Part shown: positions 14,751 to 57,683 of the stretch, piece by piece | Layout of the letters: each line of letters starts with the position of its first letter | Numbering within the stretch: the stretch's first letter is position 1 | NCBI RefSeq assembly: GCF_000315625.1 | Contig: NW_005434557.1 | Location: 134,386 to 198,385 of the forward strand | Direction of reading: 5' to 3' | DNA from: Guillardia theta CCMP2712 | Taxonomy: Eukaryota > Protista > Cryptophyta | Length of the DNA stretch: 64,000 bases | Program-made: the position numbers and the translations under genes | The notes under the pieces: generated by a model | The model's database searches: none | Told to the model about the DNA's origin: nothing | The model's input: the letters and a program-made list of their open reading frames with translations, nothing else

Positions 14751-16699
14751 ATGGCGACGGTGGAGGCGCTCCTGGCTCGCGCGATGGCGCGGCGGAGGGA
14801 GAGGGGTACGGAGAAGACGGAGAGAAGGCCTAGGCTAGAGGACGTTGTTGCTGCCTGCAGGAACGAGAAGTATCAGACGTTCTGGTCCGACTGGCTTGCT
14901 CAAGCTCTCGCTGTTCCTCTGGAGTCGATAACCCCTGCATCCTCGGCTTCCCTGTCTTTTTCTTCCCTCTCTCCTCCTCCTCCTCCTCCTCCTCCTCTCG
15001 TTCATCAACTACCCGCTAACCCTCCGCACTCTCCTCCTTACCTGGAGGCCGCTGATCGCATTTGGCAAAGGACGGAAGAGCGGAGAGAGCGGGGAGAGCA
15101 GGCAGATCGCATTCTACTGTCCGCTGCTACGGTTGTGATAGCGAAAGCGAGGCTGATGGGAAGGCCGCAAGAGCAGGTGAAGACGCTGCGAACCCCGTCC
15201 TTCGACTTCGTTCCCCTCAAGCACGGTGTACCCCCTCCTCCCTTCCCTCTCTTACCTCACACCGCCATGGCCAGGCACCGGCATTCGGGCCGACGCCTCC
15301 TTCAGAGCAGGAGAGATCATCGAGAGGGTGAGGAGAGAGATGGCAGGCGAGGAGCTGCAGCTGCTCCATCAAGGAGTTGAGGACGAGTGGGCGTTCCAGC
15401 TGGGAAGGTCGCTGGGGGATCGCGGGTCACGGGTGAGGGCGCTGGACTTGAGCAGCAACCGCATCGGGCAAGTAGGATGTGAGGTTACGTGACTCGTCCT
15501 GCTCGCTGGTGACGAAGTGACAGGCGACGGGATCGCCGAAGGCTTGTCGAGGAACAGCAGCCTGCAGGAGCTGAACCTGTCGCACAACCTCATCGACCTG
15601 GTGGCGTTGGAAGTTTTGAGTGAGAAAGCATGGAGGAGGAGGAGGAGGAGGAGGAGTGGCGCTGAAGGGAAGCAGGCGATGGACTTTTGTTGAACTCTTC
15701 CATCACTTCTCTAGGCTCCTGCGCTCCCTCCCTCCTCCTCCTCCTCATTCCCGTGCCGTGCAGATCTCAGCTACAACAAATTCTCCGCCTCCCACGACCG
15801 ACCGGCTAGCAGGTGAGCAAAGCCTGCAGAGGTCAAAGCTCAAGTGACTTGAAGACAGAAATAGACGCGACGAGGTTCTTTTCTCCTCCCCTCCTCCTCC
15901 TTCCCTCCTCCCTGCTCTTCTCCTATCCCTTGACCTTGGCAGCAGCCCTCGCACTTGTATCCTCTGCCGCATCAAGTAGCTCCCATGGGGTGACCTTCCT
16001 CCTCTCATTCTGAGTCAGGTCACGCACGTGGAGGAGGAGAAGAGCCACAGGCTGCGAAGCTTCAGGAAGTATCTGAGCTGGACGACGAGCCTGACGAGCC
16101 TGGTGGAGGAGGAAAGGGGAGGGGAGGAGTCACGCTGAGAGGAGGCGGCAGAGGCTTGCGGGATGTGAGCTGAGAGGAGACGCGTGGGTGAAGATCTGTA
16201 CGAGACGCGAGAGGGGAAGGAGGAGAAGCTCACTTACTGCAGACGAGGGGCTCAGCTTCTGCCGCTCCCTCACCTTCCTCGACATCGCCGGCAACAAACT
16301 CGGTGAGTGGGACTAGCGGAGCAAGCAGCTGACGTGAGAGACAGGCGAGGATGGCTGCGGAGTTTTGGGAGAGCTGCTGAATGTAATGGGAAAGAAGGGA
16401 GGGGATGGAGAGGGGAGCAATGATAAAGAGGAAGGAAGGACGGAAGGAAGAGGAGATGGGGAGGAGGAGATGGGAGGAGGAGATGGGAGGAGGAGATGGG
16501 AGGAGGAGATGGGGAGGAGGAGGTATGTAGGTGAACAGGAGGAGATAGTAACGGCCTGCAGCATTCTAGGTTAATTGTTTGCATCGCAAGTCACAACTCG
16601 TTTCAAGCCTCAGCCCTCCAGTGTCTGTCTGATCGCCTGGTGGGAAATTCAAACCTCATCGAATTGAGTCTCTCGAGCAACGGTATTTCTTTTGTTTGT

Positions 16700-22656: not shown

Positions 22657-22983
22657 GGCGGTGTACCAACTTTCAACTCACTTGCGCTCTACTCCATCGT
22701 CAAGTCCGCCGCGGCGGCAAAAGATTCTTGCAACGGTTCATTGACAAACGTAACCGTATTATAACGATACGTTACATAAGATATTCGTTACAATAACGGT
22801 TACAGCCCTCAACTACGTCCTCCTCATAGCCCGGCCACAGCTGCCCCAGCCACCCCCGCGCTCCTCCCGCGCTCCTCCCGCGCTCCTCCCGCGCTCCTCC
22901 CGCTCCTCCCGTCCCTCTCTCCCGCCTTCTCTTCCCTCCTCGCTCCTGACTTGCCTCTTCTCCTGGCACGCCGCTCGGCTCCG

Positions 22984-25559
22984 ATGCGACCTTCCTCGCC
23001 CCCTCGCTCCTTGCTGCACTTTGTGCTCGGGGTTGCGGTGGTGGCTGCGGCGGCGGAGAGGATACCATGCAGGGAGGAGCCGCTTCCTCCCCTCGTCGCT
23101 TGCCCTCAAGGCCAATCATGTCCCTTCGAACAAGTGCATATCTCCATAGGGCGATGGCAGGCGGGCGCGGGCTGGGAGATGACGGTGACATGGACGTCTC
23201 AGGTGGCGACAAGACCAGAGCGGAGAGCCACTGAGTGACTGATGCCTCTGACTCGCGTCTGCAGGCGCTTGCGGCCGGTCAAGTACCGTCTGTGAGAGTG
23301 TCGGAGCGCAAGGAAACTCTCACCGGTGAACCTCCTCCTTCTCCTCCTCCTCCTCCTCCTCCTCTTCCTCGTAGCTTCTCCTTGCTACTCCTAGTTACTC
23401 ATCTTCTTGCCTCCTCCTCGTTGCTCCTCCTCATAGCACCGCAGCGCCATCGGGATGCGTCGCTGATTTTGTGGGGGAGACGACCAATTACACATACACT
23501 TCATCGGGAGGTGAGGAGACTCGTCAGCCTGCTCTGCATCTCATGCCCCACTCAGGCCCATTCTACTCTCCTTCCACCAAGTTCTACGTCTCTCCCTCCA
23601 TCCATCATGTCGTCATAGGAAAGCTCCGCCCCTCCAAGTTCTACCACTATCAGGTTGAGCCCCATCTTCGTTCCTGTCTGCCTCAGCTCCTCCTCACGTG
23701 CCGTCGGTCAGGTTGGCGTCAAGCAGCGCAAGGCCATTGCAGCAGGTCGCGCGCCCTCACTCCTGGCGTGACTGGGCTGAACTCATGGCAGGGAACGACC
23801 AATATAGAGACACGGTCTTTCGTTTCAGGACTCCTCCTGCTCCAGGACAAGCCCCCAGGTTTGTCATCCTTGCTTCCGTTGCTCCTCTTGCTTCCTTTTC
23901 TTCTGCTCCCGTGGCGTGTTGTGCATGCCGCTGATGGAAGATGCCAGCGCTCAGCTTACTGGATCCGAGGTAATGAAGATAGTCGTCATCGGCGACCTCG
24001 GGCAGACCATTCACAGCCAGGTGAAGACGAGCAGGAGAGGGAGGGAGGGAGGGAGGGAGGGAGAGGAGAAGCGAGGGAGAGGAGAAGCGAGGGAAGGGAG
24101 AGGGAGGGATCGGAAGCTGAGGAGGAGGAAAAGGAGAGAGGAAACAGGGAGGGAAGGAGGGAGGGAGGGAAGAGAGAAGGAGGGAGAGGGAGGGAGGGAG
24201 GAGCTCCTGACTCGCTGGGTATTGCAGCATACCATGGAGAAGGTGGAAAGCAGCTTGAGAGCATCTGAGAATTCCTACGCCATGAGCTGGATCATCGGAG
24301 ACCTTCCTTATGCTGACGGCGACGGGCACAGATGGGACCCGTGGGGGAGGATGATGGAGCCAGCGTCCGCAAGGTCGATCCGCCTCCTCCTTTCGCGTTC
24401 TTCCTCTCCCTGACTTGCTGCTAGTCTGCCACTCATGGTCCTTCCGGGCAATCACGAGATCGAGCTCGACGCGCAGACGGCAGAGGTGAGGAAGAGGAAG
24501 AGGAGGAGGAGGAGGAGGAGGAGAGAGGGGAGGGGGTTGAGGAGGAGGAGGTTGTTTTCTGCGCCTGAAGCCTCTGCAGACCTTCACAGCGTATCGTCAC
24601 AGATTCAGAATGCCCAGCCAGCTGCCGGAGAGGACGGGGCCAGCACGGGGCAACGACATCCTGTACGAGGGAGGAGCAAGCTTTTACAGCTTTGAGCTGG
24701 GCCTCGTCCACTTTGTCTGCTTGAACACCTACAACACTCGGGGAGCGATGCATGACGTCTCCTCGGATGTGCAGCGGAAGTGGCTGGAGGAGGATCTCAA
24801 GGCGGTTGACAGGAGGAAGACGCCGTTCGTGGTTGTCGGGATGCACGCGCCCTTCTACAACAGCAACAGGAACCACCAAGGGGAAGCTGAGACCGAGCTG
24901 ATGAAGAGCTGGGCAGAGCAGATCCTGAACCGCTACTCGGTGGATGTTGTGTTCGCCGGGCATGTGCACTCGTACGAGCGGAACTGGGGGGTGGCGACGG
25001 GAGGGAAACTTTCGTCCTCAGCTCCCTCCTACATCAACGTGGGAGACGGAGGGAACCACGAGGGCCTCTACGACGATTGGCTGCCGCAGCCTCCATACTC
25101 GGCCTACCGCAACGGCAAGTTCTTCGGGCACGGCGAGCTGTCTGTCTTCAATGCCTCGCACATGCGGTGGACTTGGATCCCCAACCCGAAGCAGGGAGAG
25201 CAGGAGGAGGACAGCGTGTGGATCGTCCGACCCGTCAGCAGCGGGAGCAAGCAGCAGCAGCAGCAGGATACCATCCTGACCAGCGGAGAGGAGGGAAGAA
25301 ACCCGCCTAGCCCCATGTCAGCCGCTCTCCCCCTCACCCTCCTTGGATTCGTCCTCGGTGCTTTCGCGTACGTCATCAGCAAGAGGGTGACGAGGGAGGA
25401 AAGGGGAGGAGGGTCTTCCTATGAAGTGTCAAGCGCCCCGCTGCTCAAGCAGGTACCTTCATATCCCTTCCCTCCTTTCTTAACCCCCCTTTACCCTTCC
25501 CCTCACCCACCCCCTTTGCCTCCTAGGGGTCCCTGAGATCTTTCGCAGTCTCCAGCTGA
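22984..25559 (+). CDS. Purple acid phosphatase with signal peptide and C-terminal TM helix
   Basis: EQVHISI, metal-ligand motifs GDLG, GDLPYADG, GNHE, VGMHAPFY and GHVHSYER. Hydrophobic LPLTLLGFVLGAFAYVI near the C-terminus. Confidence 0.93.
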
Positions 25560-25821
25560 TATCGAGGTGAAGGCAGAGAGCTCAAGCACTCGTCTCATGC
25601 ACGATCACACCTACGTGAGTCGAACTTTCCTGACCCCCCCCCACCCTCCCCACTCTCATCCAGCTCCTCCTCTCCTCCCCTGCCTCACTCCTGCGGTGCT
25701 GCAGGCATGAGCGTGTTGTAGCTGGCGGGACTTCAAGAAGAGACTCTCACGCTTCACTTCACTGCAACTTCTCCGTTTCTCTCCCCACGTCCACAGGCCT
25801 CCGGGCAACGGGCCAACCCCT

Positions 25822-25884
25822 AGAGGGTCTCGGGCGACAGCCAGTCCAAGGACTTTTGCGCTTGTCGCCGTCATGGCCTCCCGC
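25822..25884 (-). promoter_or_regulatory. Eukaryotic type II SECIS element in 3' UTR of the DsbA/FrnE gene
   Basis: Minus strand reads AUGA-C-GGCGACAAGCGC-AAAA-GUCC-UU-GGAC-UG-GCUGUCGCC-C-GA-G: AUGA/GA core, GGCGAC/GUCGCC stem, unpaired AAAA and apical ministem. Confidence 0.88.
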
Positions 25885-25944
25885 AGCCATCGCGCCATTT
25901 AGACAAGGGGGAGGAGGAGGAGGAGGAGGAGGAGGAGGAGGAAA

Positions 25945-27430
25945 CTAGTCTAGAACCTCGCGGAACACCTGCTCGAAGACCTCCGGAGGCTGGGCGCCTG
26001 AGAGTCCCTCCTGCATGTCTGTAAGGAGGAGGAGAGGGTTGAGCTCGTTCGCACCTCTCCATTGATGATGAAGAAGGGAACACCAGAGACGCTGCGGCCG
26101 AACTTCTTCTTCTCGGCCTCAACCTGATCACTGTGAGAATAAGAGCAGAAGAGGGGGAGGGAGAGAGGGGAGGGGGAGAGGGAAGTAGCGACAGGAGTCG
26201 TGTTGGAGGAAATCACAGTGAAGAGATTGAGGCATCAGCAGCACCTCCTTGGCGAAGGCCTGCGGGTTGGAGATAACGCCCGCTGCCTCCTGGTGCTCCT
26301 GTTAGCCCCGCTGTCCTTCCCTCTTCCTCTCCGTCCCCTAAGTTTCCTCCTCTACCTGTCGATCGAGACCGACTTTCTCCGCCGCCTGCCACAGCTTGTC
26401 ACATGCTGAGGAAAAGGGTGGGGAGGGAAGGAAGGAAGGACCTGCTCCAGGACCTGAGGGTCTCCAATGTACTTCTCCTGCGAGAAGTAGTTCCTAACGC
26501 TTCATGTCAGCTCCTCCCCAGTCACCTCCCTCCACCCACATGAAGAGCTCTTCCATCAGCTCGTCCTGCTTCCCCTTGGTCCCCGCCCAATAGATCAGCC
26601 GGTGAGCTAAGAGAAGCGCGTCAGCTCGCCCCCCCCCCTCCCCTGCCTCCCTCCTCCTCTTCTCACAGTCGAAGGTGTTTCCCGTCATCCCACCCATGCT
26701 GAACTTCACGCCGACGCTGCATCGCAACCCGTGAGGTCACAGGACGAGGGCGGACAAGGTTGGCTCACTTGTCGAAAGCCTGGGTGAGCCGGGGCATCTG
26801 CCATCCGGTCAGTCTCCTCCTCGTCAAGTCGCACGAGTGACCATCATGCGAACTCTGTCGGCCCCGAACTTCTCGTGGTACATCTCAAGCTTGTTCCGAC
26901 CCTCCTTTGGAGCCTCAGGTTGAAGCTGGAAGGGTCTGGTGGCGAACAGGTCAGGGAGGGACAGGGAAGCATTGAGCTGCTCACCGCCAGTTCACTTCGA
27001 ACTGAACTTGTGGGAATTTCTTCATCGCCTGCTCCAGGTGACGCTTTCCCACGAAACACCTGGAGGGGGGGGTAAGGGGCGACGAGGCTAGACGGGCCTC
27101 ACCATGGTCAAATGGTGTCAGACACGATGTCAACAACAATGCGCTTGGCGGCAGACATGTCAGCAGCTCCTCCGCCTGGCAAGTCGATCCATGAACACAA
27201 ACACATCAGTGATCAGACATGTACTCACGTAGGTGCAACGCAGAAACAGTGGTGGGGCAATGTCGCTGAGGGGAAGCAACTAGTGCTGAAAGGCGCTTCG
27301 CATGCATGAGACAAGAGAGTCGGCGCGATTGCAAGGAAGGCGCAAAGGAGGATGATACTGCATGAGCACTGGTGATCAAAGCAAACAATCCAACACTGGG
27401 GAGGAGGCGCTTGCTGTGGAGCCGGAACAT
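25945..27430 (-). CDS. DsbA/FrnE-family thiol-disulfide oxidoreductase; selenoprotein (UPWC) with bipartite targeting presequence
   Basis: Spliced IVVDIVSDTI-[TGA 27108-27110]-PW|CFVGKRHLEQA...NWRPFQLQP...GNTFDSHRLIYWA...VSGVPFFIING...SGAQPPEVF. SECIS downstream. Exon 1 (27229-27430) encodes signal plus SSSFAP transit peptide. Confidence 0.92.
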
Positions 27431-28555
27431 GCTCAAGATGCCTCCGGTGACTGACAAGCTTGACAAGAGGAGAACTTCTGATGAAAAAGCGAACATCACA
27501 AGCATTTCAAGATCAGAGCGGGGTAACGGAATCATGAAGCATGTGAGAGTGGTTTGTAAAGCAGCATATTATGAGACCAGCAGATGAGAAGTGCATACAA
27601 AAGTTCACCCTTGAGTACCTCCCACTTCCTCCTCTGGTAATCGAACTGTGCGCCATATCCCTTGACCCTACTTCCTCCTTAGTCTCAACCCATTACTCTG
27701 TACGTCTTCTACTCACAACTGCTTTTGTCCTTCGCCTGGAGCATCATTCTCTCCTATGTTGTTCTTGTCAACCCTTCTCCCAGAACTCTCACGTCCATCA
27801 GTCTCTAGGAACCCATCACTTCTTTTCATATCATGGCATTCAGCTGTTTTCTTTGAATTTCTTGTTGAATACTATTCCACAACTTCCCTACGATCCACTT
27901 CTTCGACACTTCCTCATACCTGATTCTGCGCCCATTACACCTCATCCCAACCCTTGCCTTGGTGCCTTTGTCTTTCTACCTGCCTTCCTGCTTGTCTTCC
28001 TACCTGACGTCCTCCCTCCCTCCCTCCCTCCCTCCCTCCCTTCCTCCCTCCCTCCCTCCCTCCCTCCCTCACTCCCTCTCTCAGTCTTGGCACAAGATCA
28101 TGGGACAGTATGCACCACCCCACCCCTGCAATTTAATACCCCCTCTACCCTACCCAATACGCTCAATGCCCCTATCCCCTTGAAATTCAGTTGTAAGGGG
28201 GGGTGATGAAACTAAAAGATAGGATGAGGAGGGTGGGGGTACGTCTGTCATTCGTGAAAGGGAGTGGGGTGAAAGAGGCAAAGTTCGAAAAGGGGTGGTG
28301 GGGGTGAAAAGGTACCCCTTCATTACTCTGATAAATACCTGGTTTTATAGGGGTACTTCCATGTTTTTGCTATCTGGGGGTGGGTGGGTCCGCGGTTCAT
28401 CAATTGATGCGGGGAGGTGCATCGATTGAAGCGGATCTGAAAGGAGGGGTCATTATGACCTCAAAAAGAGGGGTAGGGGTGAAAATCTCCAGTCACAGAC
28501 TCTCTTGATGGCGATGGTGATAGCGATGGCTGCGCAGGAATAGTATCAGGAAATA

Positions 28556-28787
28556 GAGAGTCAAGGAGATGATAGTAGAGTCAAGGAGATGATAGTAGAG
28601 TCAAGGAGATGATAGTAGAGTCAAGGAGATGATAGTAGAGTCAAGGAGAGGATAGTAGAGTCAAGGAGATGATAGTAGAGTACACAAGGAGATGATAGTA
28701 GAGTCAAGGAGATGATAGTAGAGTCAAGGAGATGATAGTAGAGGCAAGGATATGATAGTAGAGTCAAGGAGATGATAGTAGAGTCAA
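28556..28787. repeat. 20-bp minisatellite GATAGTAGAGTCAAGGAGAT, about 11-12 copies
   Basis: Tandem units with few variants and no spacers. Confidence 0.95.
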
Positions 28788-28799
28788 CGAGTATCCTTG

Positions 28800-29402
28800 A
28801 TATGGTTCCTCGACCCGTCCAGGTCCTAGTCCCGGGCCCTAGCCTGAAGGTTTCCTGAGAAACGGTCATAGGCTGGGCATGAGAAGGCCATCGATCTCCT
28901 TCCAACGCTCTCTGTCAAGGCGATCAAGCTGCTCCCTTGGTCTTGACAGATCCCTTCGGAGCTCCCTATAACCTTCTGTTCTCGAGGCTGTCCCGTGTCT
29001 TCCTCATATGGCCTCCCTGAGCAGAACAAATCTGATAGTACTGTCTTCCCTGATCAGACCCCTTGGCAAGGCCAGCTCTTCGAACGTGTAAGGGTTGAAG
29101 ATGAACCTGGGCTCCCCACTGCCGTCCAGGATCTGCAGCGACCCGACACACCAGAAGGCCTGCTGCTTGATGCCCTCGTTCCTCTGCGCCGTGCTGATCT
29201 GGTGGGCGTAGTCCCCGCAGGCGCATCGGTAGATCGTGTTTGTCGTCACATCCGGCAGCTTGCAGTGCTTCTGGTCCAGGTCTGCAGGACGTCCATGAAT
29301 CCGCACCTCACCCCGGACGCATAGGCCAGCATCGCATCGACCGAATGACTTAGTATCGTGACAGGCGACAGCTCCAGACCGAACCGTTCTGCGTACGGTC
29401 AC
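28800..29402 (-). pseudogene. Fragment of an unknown Cys-rich protein
   Basis: Coding-like GC3 bias. CKLPDVTTNTIYRCACGDYAHQI...AFWCVGSLQILDGSGEPRFIFNPYTFEEL. No clear start, and the frame breaks down toward the minisatellite. Confidence 0.4.
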
Positions 29403-29673
29403 CGTATCCTACCCGCGGGTCAGGCTTGCCGGCCGGTCAAGCAGCGGCAGACCATGCTGAGCCCCCGCGGGGTAGAGCCGCAAGCACGCGCGGCCTGCGG
29501 CAGCCTCCGTCAGCACCGGGCCCGGGGATCACCGGGCGAGGCCGGCCGGGCTAGTCACGGTCGCACTGAGGACTTCGCAGCTTTAAGTTTACTCAGTAAA
29601 AGATTCACCCACACGTGCCGGCACCGCCTCCTCCGCCTACCCAGGAGACCCTGAGTCAACCGCAGTCAACCCG

Positions 29674-31944
29674 CTAGTCCACTGAGTCACTACCGCTCCT
29701 CATCTCACCCTGTTGCTCCTCCCGCCTGCTCGCACTGCTGGCCTTCGTGCCGAACGTTGTCTTGTCCTTGTCGAGGTATGGCTTCTTCAACGATCGCCAG
29801 ATGTCGAACCCATCATACTCCTCGAACTCCTCCACGTCTCCTGCCGCAGCGGCTGTCGGTGTGCGGACCGATACTAGGGGAGAAGGAGGAGGATGAGGAA
29901 AAGAGCAGGAAGGTGAAGATAGTCGTGAGTAGGAGGAGCAGGAGCAGGAGCAGGACGGGTTAAGAGGGTGAAGAGAAGGAGTAGAAACCTATGTGATCCA
30001 GCCGGACATAGGTGTCGCATCCATGACCCTGCACCAGCATGACGGGATAGCCCGGCAGACAAGCCTCCCGTCTCCTGTCCTCCACCTCACCTCGACTGAA
30101 TAGAGTTTCACGTCTCCTCCGAAGTACTGTACACCGTCAGCGACTCTCAGGTGCCTCCAACTCTGCACCTGAGCATAGAGGCGAGAAACAGGAAGGCCGA
30201 AGCCCAGCCCTGCCATGGGCGAAGTCTCGAGCACAGCTCGATCCACCTGAGCCAGGCCAACCACTATCAGCCCTCCTCTCAACAGGCATCGGCAACTCCA
30301 CCATTCCCAGCCCTGCCGTGTCGAACTCGTCGTCGAGCCGATTCTCCTGGTTGCAAGTGCTGCGGGCGCGGCTGAGCAACTTGCTACCGAGAGGTCACGC
30401 GACGCCCACCTGAACCCGAAGTCGAAGATCTTGTTGACGAACTCGCGCGGCACTCCTCCCCCCTCATCCGAGATCCTGATCGTCATGTCCGACGGCCCTC
30501 GCGCGAGCAAGAACTGCCTCCGGCTCACACGGCGAGCGCAGGAAAGCATGTCACCTTGATGGGCGGCAGCCCGTCCTTGTTCATCAGGTGGCGCTCGCAG
30601 ACGGCTCGCATCGCGTTCTTGAGGAGCTCAAAGATGATGTACTCGAGGTGCGTCGGGATGTAGCTGGCGGGACTTCAGCCATGGCCAGGGAGCGGGTCGG
30701 TCGCACCTGCAGAGGATGGAAGTGTCTCCCTCGACAACGTACTTCGGAGAGATGCCGTAGGTCCTGCAAGCGATCTTGAGCCCCGGGGGTCTCGATGCTG
30801 CGCACGAGACCTCTGGCAGATGTTCTGTGCCTCTGGAGCAACGTGCTCGAGGACCTTGAGGGGAGAGAGCTCCTTGCAGATCACCCCGACGTAGCCTGTC
30901 ACGTGTGGTCCTCACGTGACTCGAAGGGGGAAGGGTTGGATGCTCACCAGGCTGATGGTGGTGTAGGGCGATGAACTGTTCCGCGATCACTCGGCGACTT
31001 ATCCGGCTCTGACACCCAGGATAGTCAACTCGTGCTCACATGGAGCGAGAGCGGGAGCAACCATGATCATGTCTGCAAGGAATTTGTTGCAATTCAGTCG
31101 CTCTGTGCTCACTCGCAAGCTCGCCTCGTAGATTCCTCTGCACAACGTCATGAGTTCAGCTATGCATCAATTCAACATCAAAAGCTGACGCCGTCACCTT
31201 GCTAGAAGCGGAACAACCTGCACGCCCTCTTGAACCAACTCCTTCAACAGCAGCACGAATTGCTCATCCTGACATGGTCAAATCACGCGCAACCCATTTC
31301 GTGCTCCCTCAGTACCTGGTTAATATTCACGACTTTTGGGAAATCCACAAGCTTTGCAAACGCGCGGTGGTATATCGCATGGACACTCTGAACCAGCAAG
31401 CCAACAAGGGTCAATCATACAGGTTGCCCAGTGGCTCCTGCTTGCCTGAATGTGCGGATTCTCAACAACAATGTATGGCAGGGTTTGTATGTCCAACAAC
31501 CTTCTTGCCAACCTGATACAGAGCTCCCTAGTGTCCAGGATCACAAGACATTCGAAGTGGTAATAGGAACCTCTGAACGTGCTGGGCGATAGCGATCAGC
31601 CTCTCGTTATTCACTTTGTGCCCGGACGACATGAGCTCGTGTATGGTCAACCTAAGAGAGGGACACGAGGCCTCATCTCCGCAGCCTCAGCACGACAGCA
31701 GCAAGGTCACCGGTGAATGGGAAGCTCAGCATACTTCTGGATCGTTTGGTCGTAGAAATTCAACCGGATCCTATCGACACTCTCAGCACAACAACGGCCA
31801 TAGTGCTCGCTACCTGTCCGAGAAGGCCCTCCTACCATCCCTCTTCCTCGGCTGGTTCCGCTGCCATCCACAGACGTGCGGGTACGGGGCGTTATCGCAA
31901 GGAAGCGCCCTCGAGCAGCTCCAACCAAGGCGCTGGAGTTTCAT
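29674..31944 (-). CDS. Mitochondrial pyruvate dehydrogenase kinase / BCKD kinase family (multi-exon)
   Basis: [49 protein letters not shown] (N box), [11 protein letters not shown] (G1), [21 protein letters not shown] (G2). Confidence 0.93.

Positions 31945-55857: not shown

Positions 55858-57683
<1,826 letters not shown>

Follow-up and report, generated by a model that had tools for sequence, protein, structure and literature searches.

A predicted form 2 SECIS element downstream of the gene for a putative DsbA/FrnE-like selenoprotein in Guillardia theta

The DsbA/FrnE-like gene and its in-frame TGA codon

The window analyzed here, a stretch of 64,000 nt from Guillardia theta CCMP2712, carries on its minus strand a gene encoding a DsbA/FrnE-like protein, which is followed by a 62-nt hairpin and, in convergent orientation, by a purple acid phosphatase gene (Table 1). 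All positions refer to the window, in which the interval 22945-30025 is identical to NCBI scaffold JH993081.1. The DsbA gene is read on the minus strand from an ATG at 27158 to a TAG stop codon at 25947-25945, and all of its introns are of the GT-AG type. Seven of the exon junctions are found as joints in RNA-derived contigs from three runs, and a 939-nt JGI transcript contig (L122), which ends at 25908, matches every exon at 100%. The coding sequence (633 nt) is in frame and contains a single in-frame TGA, giving a 210-residue product (with X at the TGA) in which the peptide around this codon reads ...KRIVVDIVSDTI-U-PWCFVGKRHLEQA....

Table 1. Positions of the genes, codons, and predicted SECIS parts at the locus
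Feature	Position	Strand	Basis
DsbA/FrnE-like selenoprotein gene (predicted), 11 coding exons	25945..27175	-	RNA joints, transcript L122
DsbA exons, first six	27175-27103, 27059-26985, 26935-26842, 26797-26769, 26716-26667, 26606-26540	-	
DsbA exons, last five	26493-26442, 26385-26356, 26289-26245, 26123-26055, 26010-25945	-	
In-frame TGA replacing the first Cys of CPWC (DTI-U-PWC)	27108..27110	-	Reading frame and homologues
(CCU)n microsatellite between DsbA stop and SECIS	25907..25941	-	Direct read; transcript assemblies break there
Predicted SECIS element, whole, form 2 (type II), 62 nt	25823..25884	-	RF00031, orthologue-only model R1, descriptor scan
AUGA, 5' half of the predicted kink-turn core (non-Watson-Crick quartet)	25871..25874	-	Direct read
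GA, 3' half of the core	25830..25831	-	Direct read
GAG, invariant across orthologues	25831-25829	-	Alignment
Helix II, 5' arm (GGCGAC, bulged A 25863, AGC, G 25859)	25859..25869	-	Fold and covariation
Helix II, 3' arm (G, GCU, GUCGCC)	25833..25842	-	Fold and covariation
AAAA, unpaired AAR motif in the internal loop, starting 13 nt after AUGA	25854..25857	-	Direct read
Ministem (helix III), GUC 25853-25851 with GAC 25846-25844, 3 bp, CUUG loop	25844..25853	-	Fold
Tentative helix I, GGG with CCC 25827-25825	25880..25882	-	3 bp in the Rfam alignment, inferred
Stop codon TGA of the convergent purple acid phosphatase gene	25708..25710	+	RNA joints; NCBI annotation agrees

When the spliced protein was compared directly with the retrieved homologues, residues 5-208 of the 210-residue product could be aligned with FrnE-like proteins of bacteria (35-42% identity), the lowest E value being 3e-51. 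This alignment assigns the product a DSBA-like thioredoxin fold, with U-P-W-C in the place of C-x-x-C. The motif SDT[VI]-CPWC-[FY][VI]GK is present in 77 of 120 relatives found with the annotated part of the protein, which indicates that the TGA stands for the first Cys. CPWC is also present in land-plant and green-algal DSBA relatives. Among searches with single exons, the sole PDB match of exon 2 was to residues 25-49 of FrnE (5cnw), directly after its CXXC, PDB searches with exon 1 and exon 10 gave no match, and only exon 10 matched in Pfam (PF01323, E 0.081). A profile made from a bacterial scaffold and the exons, for which the MAFFT alignment was poor, still retrieved the NCBI protein.

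The public gene model, GUITHDRAFT_117897 (180 aa), corresponds exactly to residues 31-210 of this product; it starts at Met31, past the TGA, and its PF01323 assignment was precomputed on the annotated C-terminal 180 aa. The 5' part is represented by an MMETSP open reading frame (P0001) that stops at the TGA and ends in ...VSDTI. An upstream presequence exon ending at 27229 yields an in-frame N-terminal extension, in which ...HLR is joined to GGAADM. As judged from the reading frame and the homologues, the true product is predicted to be a selenoprotein that is extended at the N terminus and carries a U-P-W-C site; this corrects the public model, begun at Met31 without the catalytic center.

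Two apparent 5' forms of the DsbA transcript are seen on the minus strand in the region 27229-28000. One RNA contig spans 27228-27666 and then splices to 27716-28000, and P0001 begins with MGAE and is joined at about 27478. In one RNA contig of the X8 run, 27479 is joined to an inverted copy of the exon 3/4 junction; this contig was taken for an assembly chimera.

The hairpin and the convergent phosphatase gene

On the minus strand, positions 25884-25823 read GCGGGAGGCC-AUGA-C-GGCGAC-A-AGC-GC-AAAA-GUC-CUUG-GAC-UG-GCU-GUCGCC-C-GA-GACCCUC. A first-pass annotation had proposed a type II SECIS about 70 nt past the DsbA stop codon, and the AUGA indeed lies 70 nt after the TAG at 25947-25945 on the same strand; the letters that it had named (AUGA, GA, GGCGAC/GUCGCC, AGC/GCU, and AAAA) were all found in place. 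Its ministem, drawn as GUCC-UU-GGAC, had to be revised, as it would leave a loop of 2 nt, and the feasible form has 3 bp and a CUUG loop. Helix II is formed by GGCGAC 25869-25864 with GUCGCC 25838-25833 and by AGC 25862-25860 with GCU 25841-25839, giving 9 pairs in G. theta, i.e., 9 of the 10 consensus pairs; at one helix II position, G 25859 stands opposite G 25842, forming G.G. The position adjoining the core is C.C or C.U, and AUGA and GA are predicted to pair as tandem G.A in a non-Watson-Crick core. Helix I of the G. theta element is short or ambiguous: besides the three pairs listed in Table 1, the minimum free energy fold offers an alternative lower stem of GGCC 25878-25875 with GGCC 25816-25813, into which a further hairpin is inserted. 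The folding energy of the 86-nt stretch is not lower than that of its shuffles (z -0.07), and the case for a SECIS thus rests on motif, position, and conservation rather than on stability.

The search with the Rfam model SECIS_1 (RF00031), which the first-pass annotation had put forward as a check, gave a mixed outcome: the match is full length (1-64) and is the sole one in the whole 64-kb window on both strands (128 kb), but its score of 22.9 bits lies below the gathering score of 35. The corresponding E value is 6.6 after correction for 4227 families and about 0.0016 for the single family. The gathering threshold of an Rfam family is the curators' cut-off and not a biological feature. A descriptor of our own, requiring ATGA, AAA 12-17 nt later, GA, at least 8 helix pairs, and a dG of -15 or lower, found exactly one site in the same 128 kb, the element at 25884-25823. 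An exact search for the SECIS sequence in metagenome contigs gave no match. Many sub-threshold matches to miRNA families (e.g., at 15627-15757, 40577-41026, and 56772-56990) fall on low-complexity GGA/CCT inverted repeats elsewhere in the window.

Splicing of the purple acid phosphatase gene, which is convergent with DsbA, takes place at 25453-25548 and at 25615-25704, the latter being its last intron. The gene ends in GCA-TGA, and its last coding exon consists of these two codons only. After splicing, the phosphatase stop codon is 112 nt from the end of the SECIS, rather than the approximately 270 nt given by the first-pass annotation, a figure that seems to have come from the end of the unspliced open reading frame at 25536. 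The phosphatase stop is 234 nt from the DsbA stop, and RNA contigs joined to the last phosphatase splice junction continue over 25705-25899 and 35 further letters. The suggestion that the two 3' UTRs may overlap is thereby strengthened, with the stops 234 nt apart and the phosphatase-joined RNA running to at least 25899.

The SECIS is covered without gaps by RNA contigs of unstranded assemblies, which are joined to the exons of the phosphatase and not to those of DsbA. The reason is the (CCU)n repeat, which interrupts both assemblies and in which the DsbA contigs stop from the opposite side. Similar (CCT)n/(GGA)n runs are scattered through introns in the window and also break transcript assemblies. 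The DsbA transcript itself probably covers the SECIS. In orthologues, the DsbA UTRs continue for 149-229 nt beyond the SECIS and end in an A run, which makes it very likely that the two 3' UTRs overlap in G. theta.

Orthologous elements and covariation

The nearest relatives of the annotated protein share 55-68% identity with it, are 180-198 aa long, and all start just past the active site, as expected for selenocysteine (Sec) forms trimmed by gene callers. Transcript contigs of ten close relatives were compared, two of which (L129 and L130) start just 3' of the Sec codon. In all orthologous contigs that extend far enough upstream, a TGA is in frame at ...VSDT[VI]-U-PWC[YF]V[GA]KR. The orthologues include one from the cryptophyte Baffinella frigidus and one with a EukProt label starting with "Tamp," which we take to be Teleaulax. 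Roughly 35 of the 120 nearest DSBA proteins, most of them from protist or algal transcriptomes and one labelled Goniomonas, start just past the CPWC position, which suggests that many further Sec forms have gone uncalled. No relatives of the annotated G. theta protein (P0002) were found in the metagenome contigs.

Nine distinct orthologous transcripts, from cryptophytes and unassigned relatives, carry a hairpin built in the same way, 35-227 nt past the stop codon. In each, C-(A/C)-AUGA is followed by a base that is mostly unpaired and by a helix interrupted by a single bulge. An AAA then stands exactly 13 nt from the AUGA and is followed by a ministem of 3-6 bp at the matching place, and the returning helix strand is separated by one base from the GAG. 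The nine elements were aligned with that of G. theta by MAFFT, giving 10 sequences in which the C two bases upstream of AUGA, the AUGA, the AA, and the GAG are invariant. RNAalifold recovered helix II and the ministem from this alignment. Changes on both sides were found at all 10 helix II consensus pairs, and 87% of the helix II cells hold standard pairs, compared with 61% in 500 shuffles. When the 3' partners were slid by 1-3 columns, the paired cells dropped to 39-49%. The covariation score was 0.72, compared with 0.24, and was reached by none of the 500 shuffles. Lower stems are possible in most orthologues, but they are out of register.

The nine orthologous elements, with G. theta left out, were used to build a covariance model (R1), with which the entire window was searched, all filters being switched off. 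Its top match was 25888-25816 on the minus strand (22.8 bits, E 3e-4), and the runner-up in the window reached only 13.7 bits. RF00031, R1, and the descriptor scan of the window revealed no second SECIS-like site after the DsbA gene. RF00031 found none of the eight orthologous elements that were searched (L123, L127, L129, L132, L133, L135, L137, and L139) at E values up to 10, all of them scoring below about 19 bits, indicating that the Rfam model is weak for this lineage and that the sub-threshold score in G. theta is no counterevidence. The lack of a covariance-model hit, which the first-pass annotation had named as grounds for rejection, is too strict a standard for this lineage, since the Rfam score is sub-threshold here and the model misses all eight orthologues.

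One orthologous contig (L131, JGI 3300013295) keeps the in-frame TGA and has no recognizable SECIS in its 254-nt UTR (808-1061), which has TTAGA repeats throughout and a poly(A) run at its end. This contig may be chimeric or may carry a different element.

Proposed function, alternatives, and comparison with known systems

The hairpin at 25884-25823 is very probably the functional SECIS of a Sec-containing DsbA/FrnE-like thiol-disulfide oxidoreductase of G. theta, a reading drawn from sequence and its conservation. The earlier view that the hairpin supports Sec recoding gains from the presence of all form 2 features, from the in-frame TGA at the catalytic Cys, and from the covarying hairpin in nine orthologues. 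In eukaryotic selenoprotein synthesis, SBP2 binds the SECIS and Sec is inserted at the UGA. In the G. theta mRNA, AUGA and GA would pair as the tandem sheared G.A of a kink-turn, the unpaired AAAA would be kept at a fixed distance from it by helix II, and the ministem would close the top, as in form 2. SBP2, bound to the core, would then recruit eEFSec and Sec-tRNA(Sec) to the ribosome, and the UGA at 27110-27108 would be read as Sec to give the U-P-W-C redox center instead of causing termination after 16 residues of the mature domain. SBP2 binding and actual Sec insertion at DsbA are thus predicted from the likeness of the element to established SECIS elements.

Other explanations of the TGA and the hairpin were considered. 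The hairpin could have arisen by chance. The TGA would then be a true stop, with translation starting at Met31 as the NCBI model has it, or the gene would be a decaying pseudogene. The start of the NCBI annotation at Met31, the TransDecoder open reading frames in MMETSP that end at the TGA, the sub-threshold Rfam score, and a fold no more stable than shuffles are all consistent with this, but a protein started at Met31 would be without the entire CXXC center, and the stretch of 16 codons that precedes the TGA is also conserved in bacteria, plants, and algae. In addition, nine diverged orthologues have both the TGA and the hairpin, the latter with compensatory changes, and the model built only from orthologues selects 25888-25816 out of 128 kb, making chance a highly improbable source of the element. 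Covariation proves that a structure is selected and not what it does, and a conserved DsbA 3' UTR hairpin might instead act in stability, localization, or 3' end formation, with the UGA recoded by something else. This is only slightly easier to entertain and still very improbable, as the invariant letters are the ones that define a SECIS (AUGA, AA at 13-nt spacing, and GA), the element is found only alongside the in-frame TGA, and the searches past the DsbA gene offer no second candidate.

The element could also belong to the phosphatase transcript, as a 3' UTR structure on the plus strand, given that the RNA contig over 25705-25899 is joined to the last phosphatase splice junction and that the phosphatase stop is so close. 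However, the plus-strand letters (UCAU...UUUU...UC) correspond to no known motif, and in nine other species the hairpin follows DsbA, in the DsbA sense, with different downstream sequence, leaving this assignment with almost no probability. None of the three explanations fits easily with the finding that the TGA, the SECIS letters, and the covarying helix are conserved together in the sense of DsbA.

A broader reading, in which a functional DsbA SECIS is combined with the convergent arrangement, is speculative and unlikely to hold as a whole. In it, the 234-nt interval appears to be transcribed from both sides, and the phosphatase mRNA would carry a perfect antisense copy of the SECIS. Through pairing of the UTRs or through transcriptional interference, expression of the phosphatase could then become linked to Sec insertion or to DsbA mRNA stability. 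The nine orthologues would, in the same reading, define a DsbA SECIS subtype, with invariant C-N-AUGA and GAG and a 13-nt spacing, that is missed by Rfam.

The G. theta element resembles eukaryotic SECIS form 2 (RF00031) in its AUGA...GA core, its helix II, the unpaired AA(A) about 12-13 nt from the core, and the ministem, and also in its 3' UTR position in an mRNA with an in-frame UGA. It differs in its score (22.9 bits versus 35), in its short or ambiguous helix I, and in the C.C or C.U next to the core. The G. theta lineage is at the edge of RF00031, a model trained mostly on animals. The covariation-backed SECIS elements described here, from cryptophytes and related unassigned lineages that are poorly served by Rfam, could improve the detection of algal selenoproteins.

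Sec-containing DsbA proteins, with Sec at the first Cys of the CXXC, have been described in bacteria, Micromonas, Ciona, and amphioxus (PMC2874816), and in Ciona and Micromonas they are associated with a form II SECIS (PMC2874816, PMC7539508). The DsbA proteins of Ciona intestinalis, C. savignyi, and Branchiostoma floridae belong to the same protein family as that of G. theta, and Sec likewise replaces the first Cys of the CXXC (PMC2874816). The animal genes were similarly misannotated, with the Sec exon taken for UTR, and the Ciona DsbA SECIS is of form II with a minihelix and, as in G. theta, scores modestly (COVE, 17.9-22.4; PMC2874816). In the C. savignyi element, CC replaces AA (PMC2874816), whereas the AA is invariant in G. 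theta and its orthologues. The animal elements come from a different kingdom, and the likeness to them is one of description and not of sequence.

DSBA belongs to the Sec families with the widest distribution in algae, and 14 selenoproteins from 12 families have been attributed to G. theta (PMC7539508). Neither the text nor the supplement of that study states whether DsbA is one of the 12 G. theta families, and covariation across cryptophytes is absent from its text (PMC7539508). FrnE of Deinococcus radiodurans (5cnw) and the bacterial and plant FrnE/YwbO-like DSBA proteins (PF01323) are full-length homologues of the G. theta protein, at the 35-42% identity given above. Unlike it, the FrnE/YwbO-like proteins use Cys, in the motif SDT-x-CPWC-[FY]-[VI]-GK, and need no SECIS. 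Knowledge of Sec decoding is unchanged by these results, and the use of Sec by G. theta was already known. The element is an ordinary case of a known kind, in a Sec-DsbA family already recognized in algae, to which the present analysis adds covariation across cryptophyte-like orthologues, a corrected gene model, and a corrected distance to the neighboring gene.
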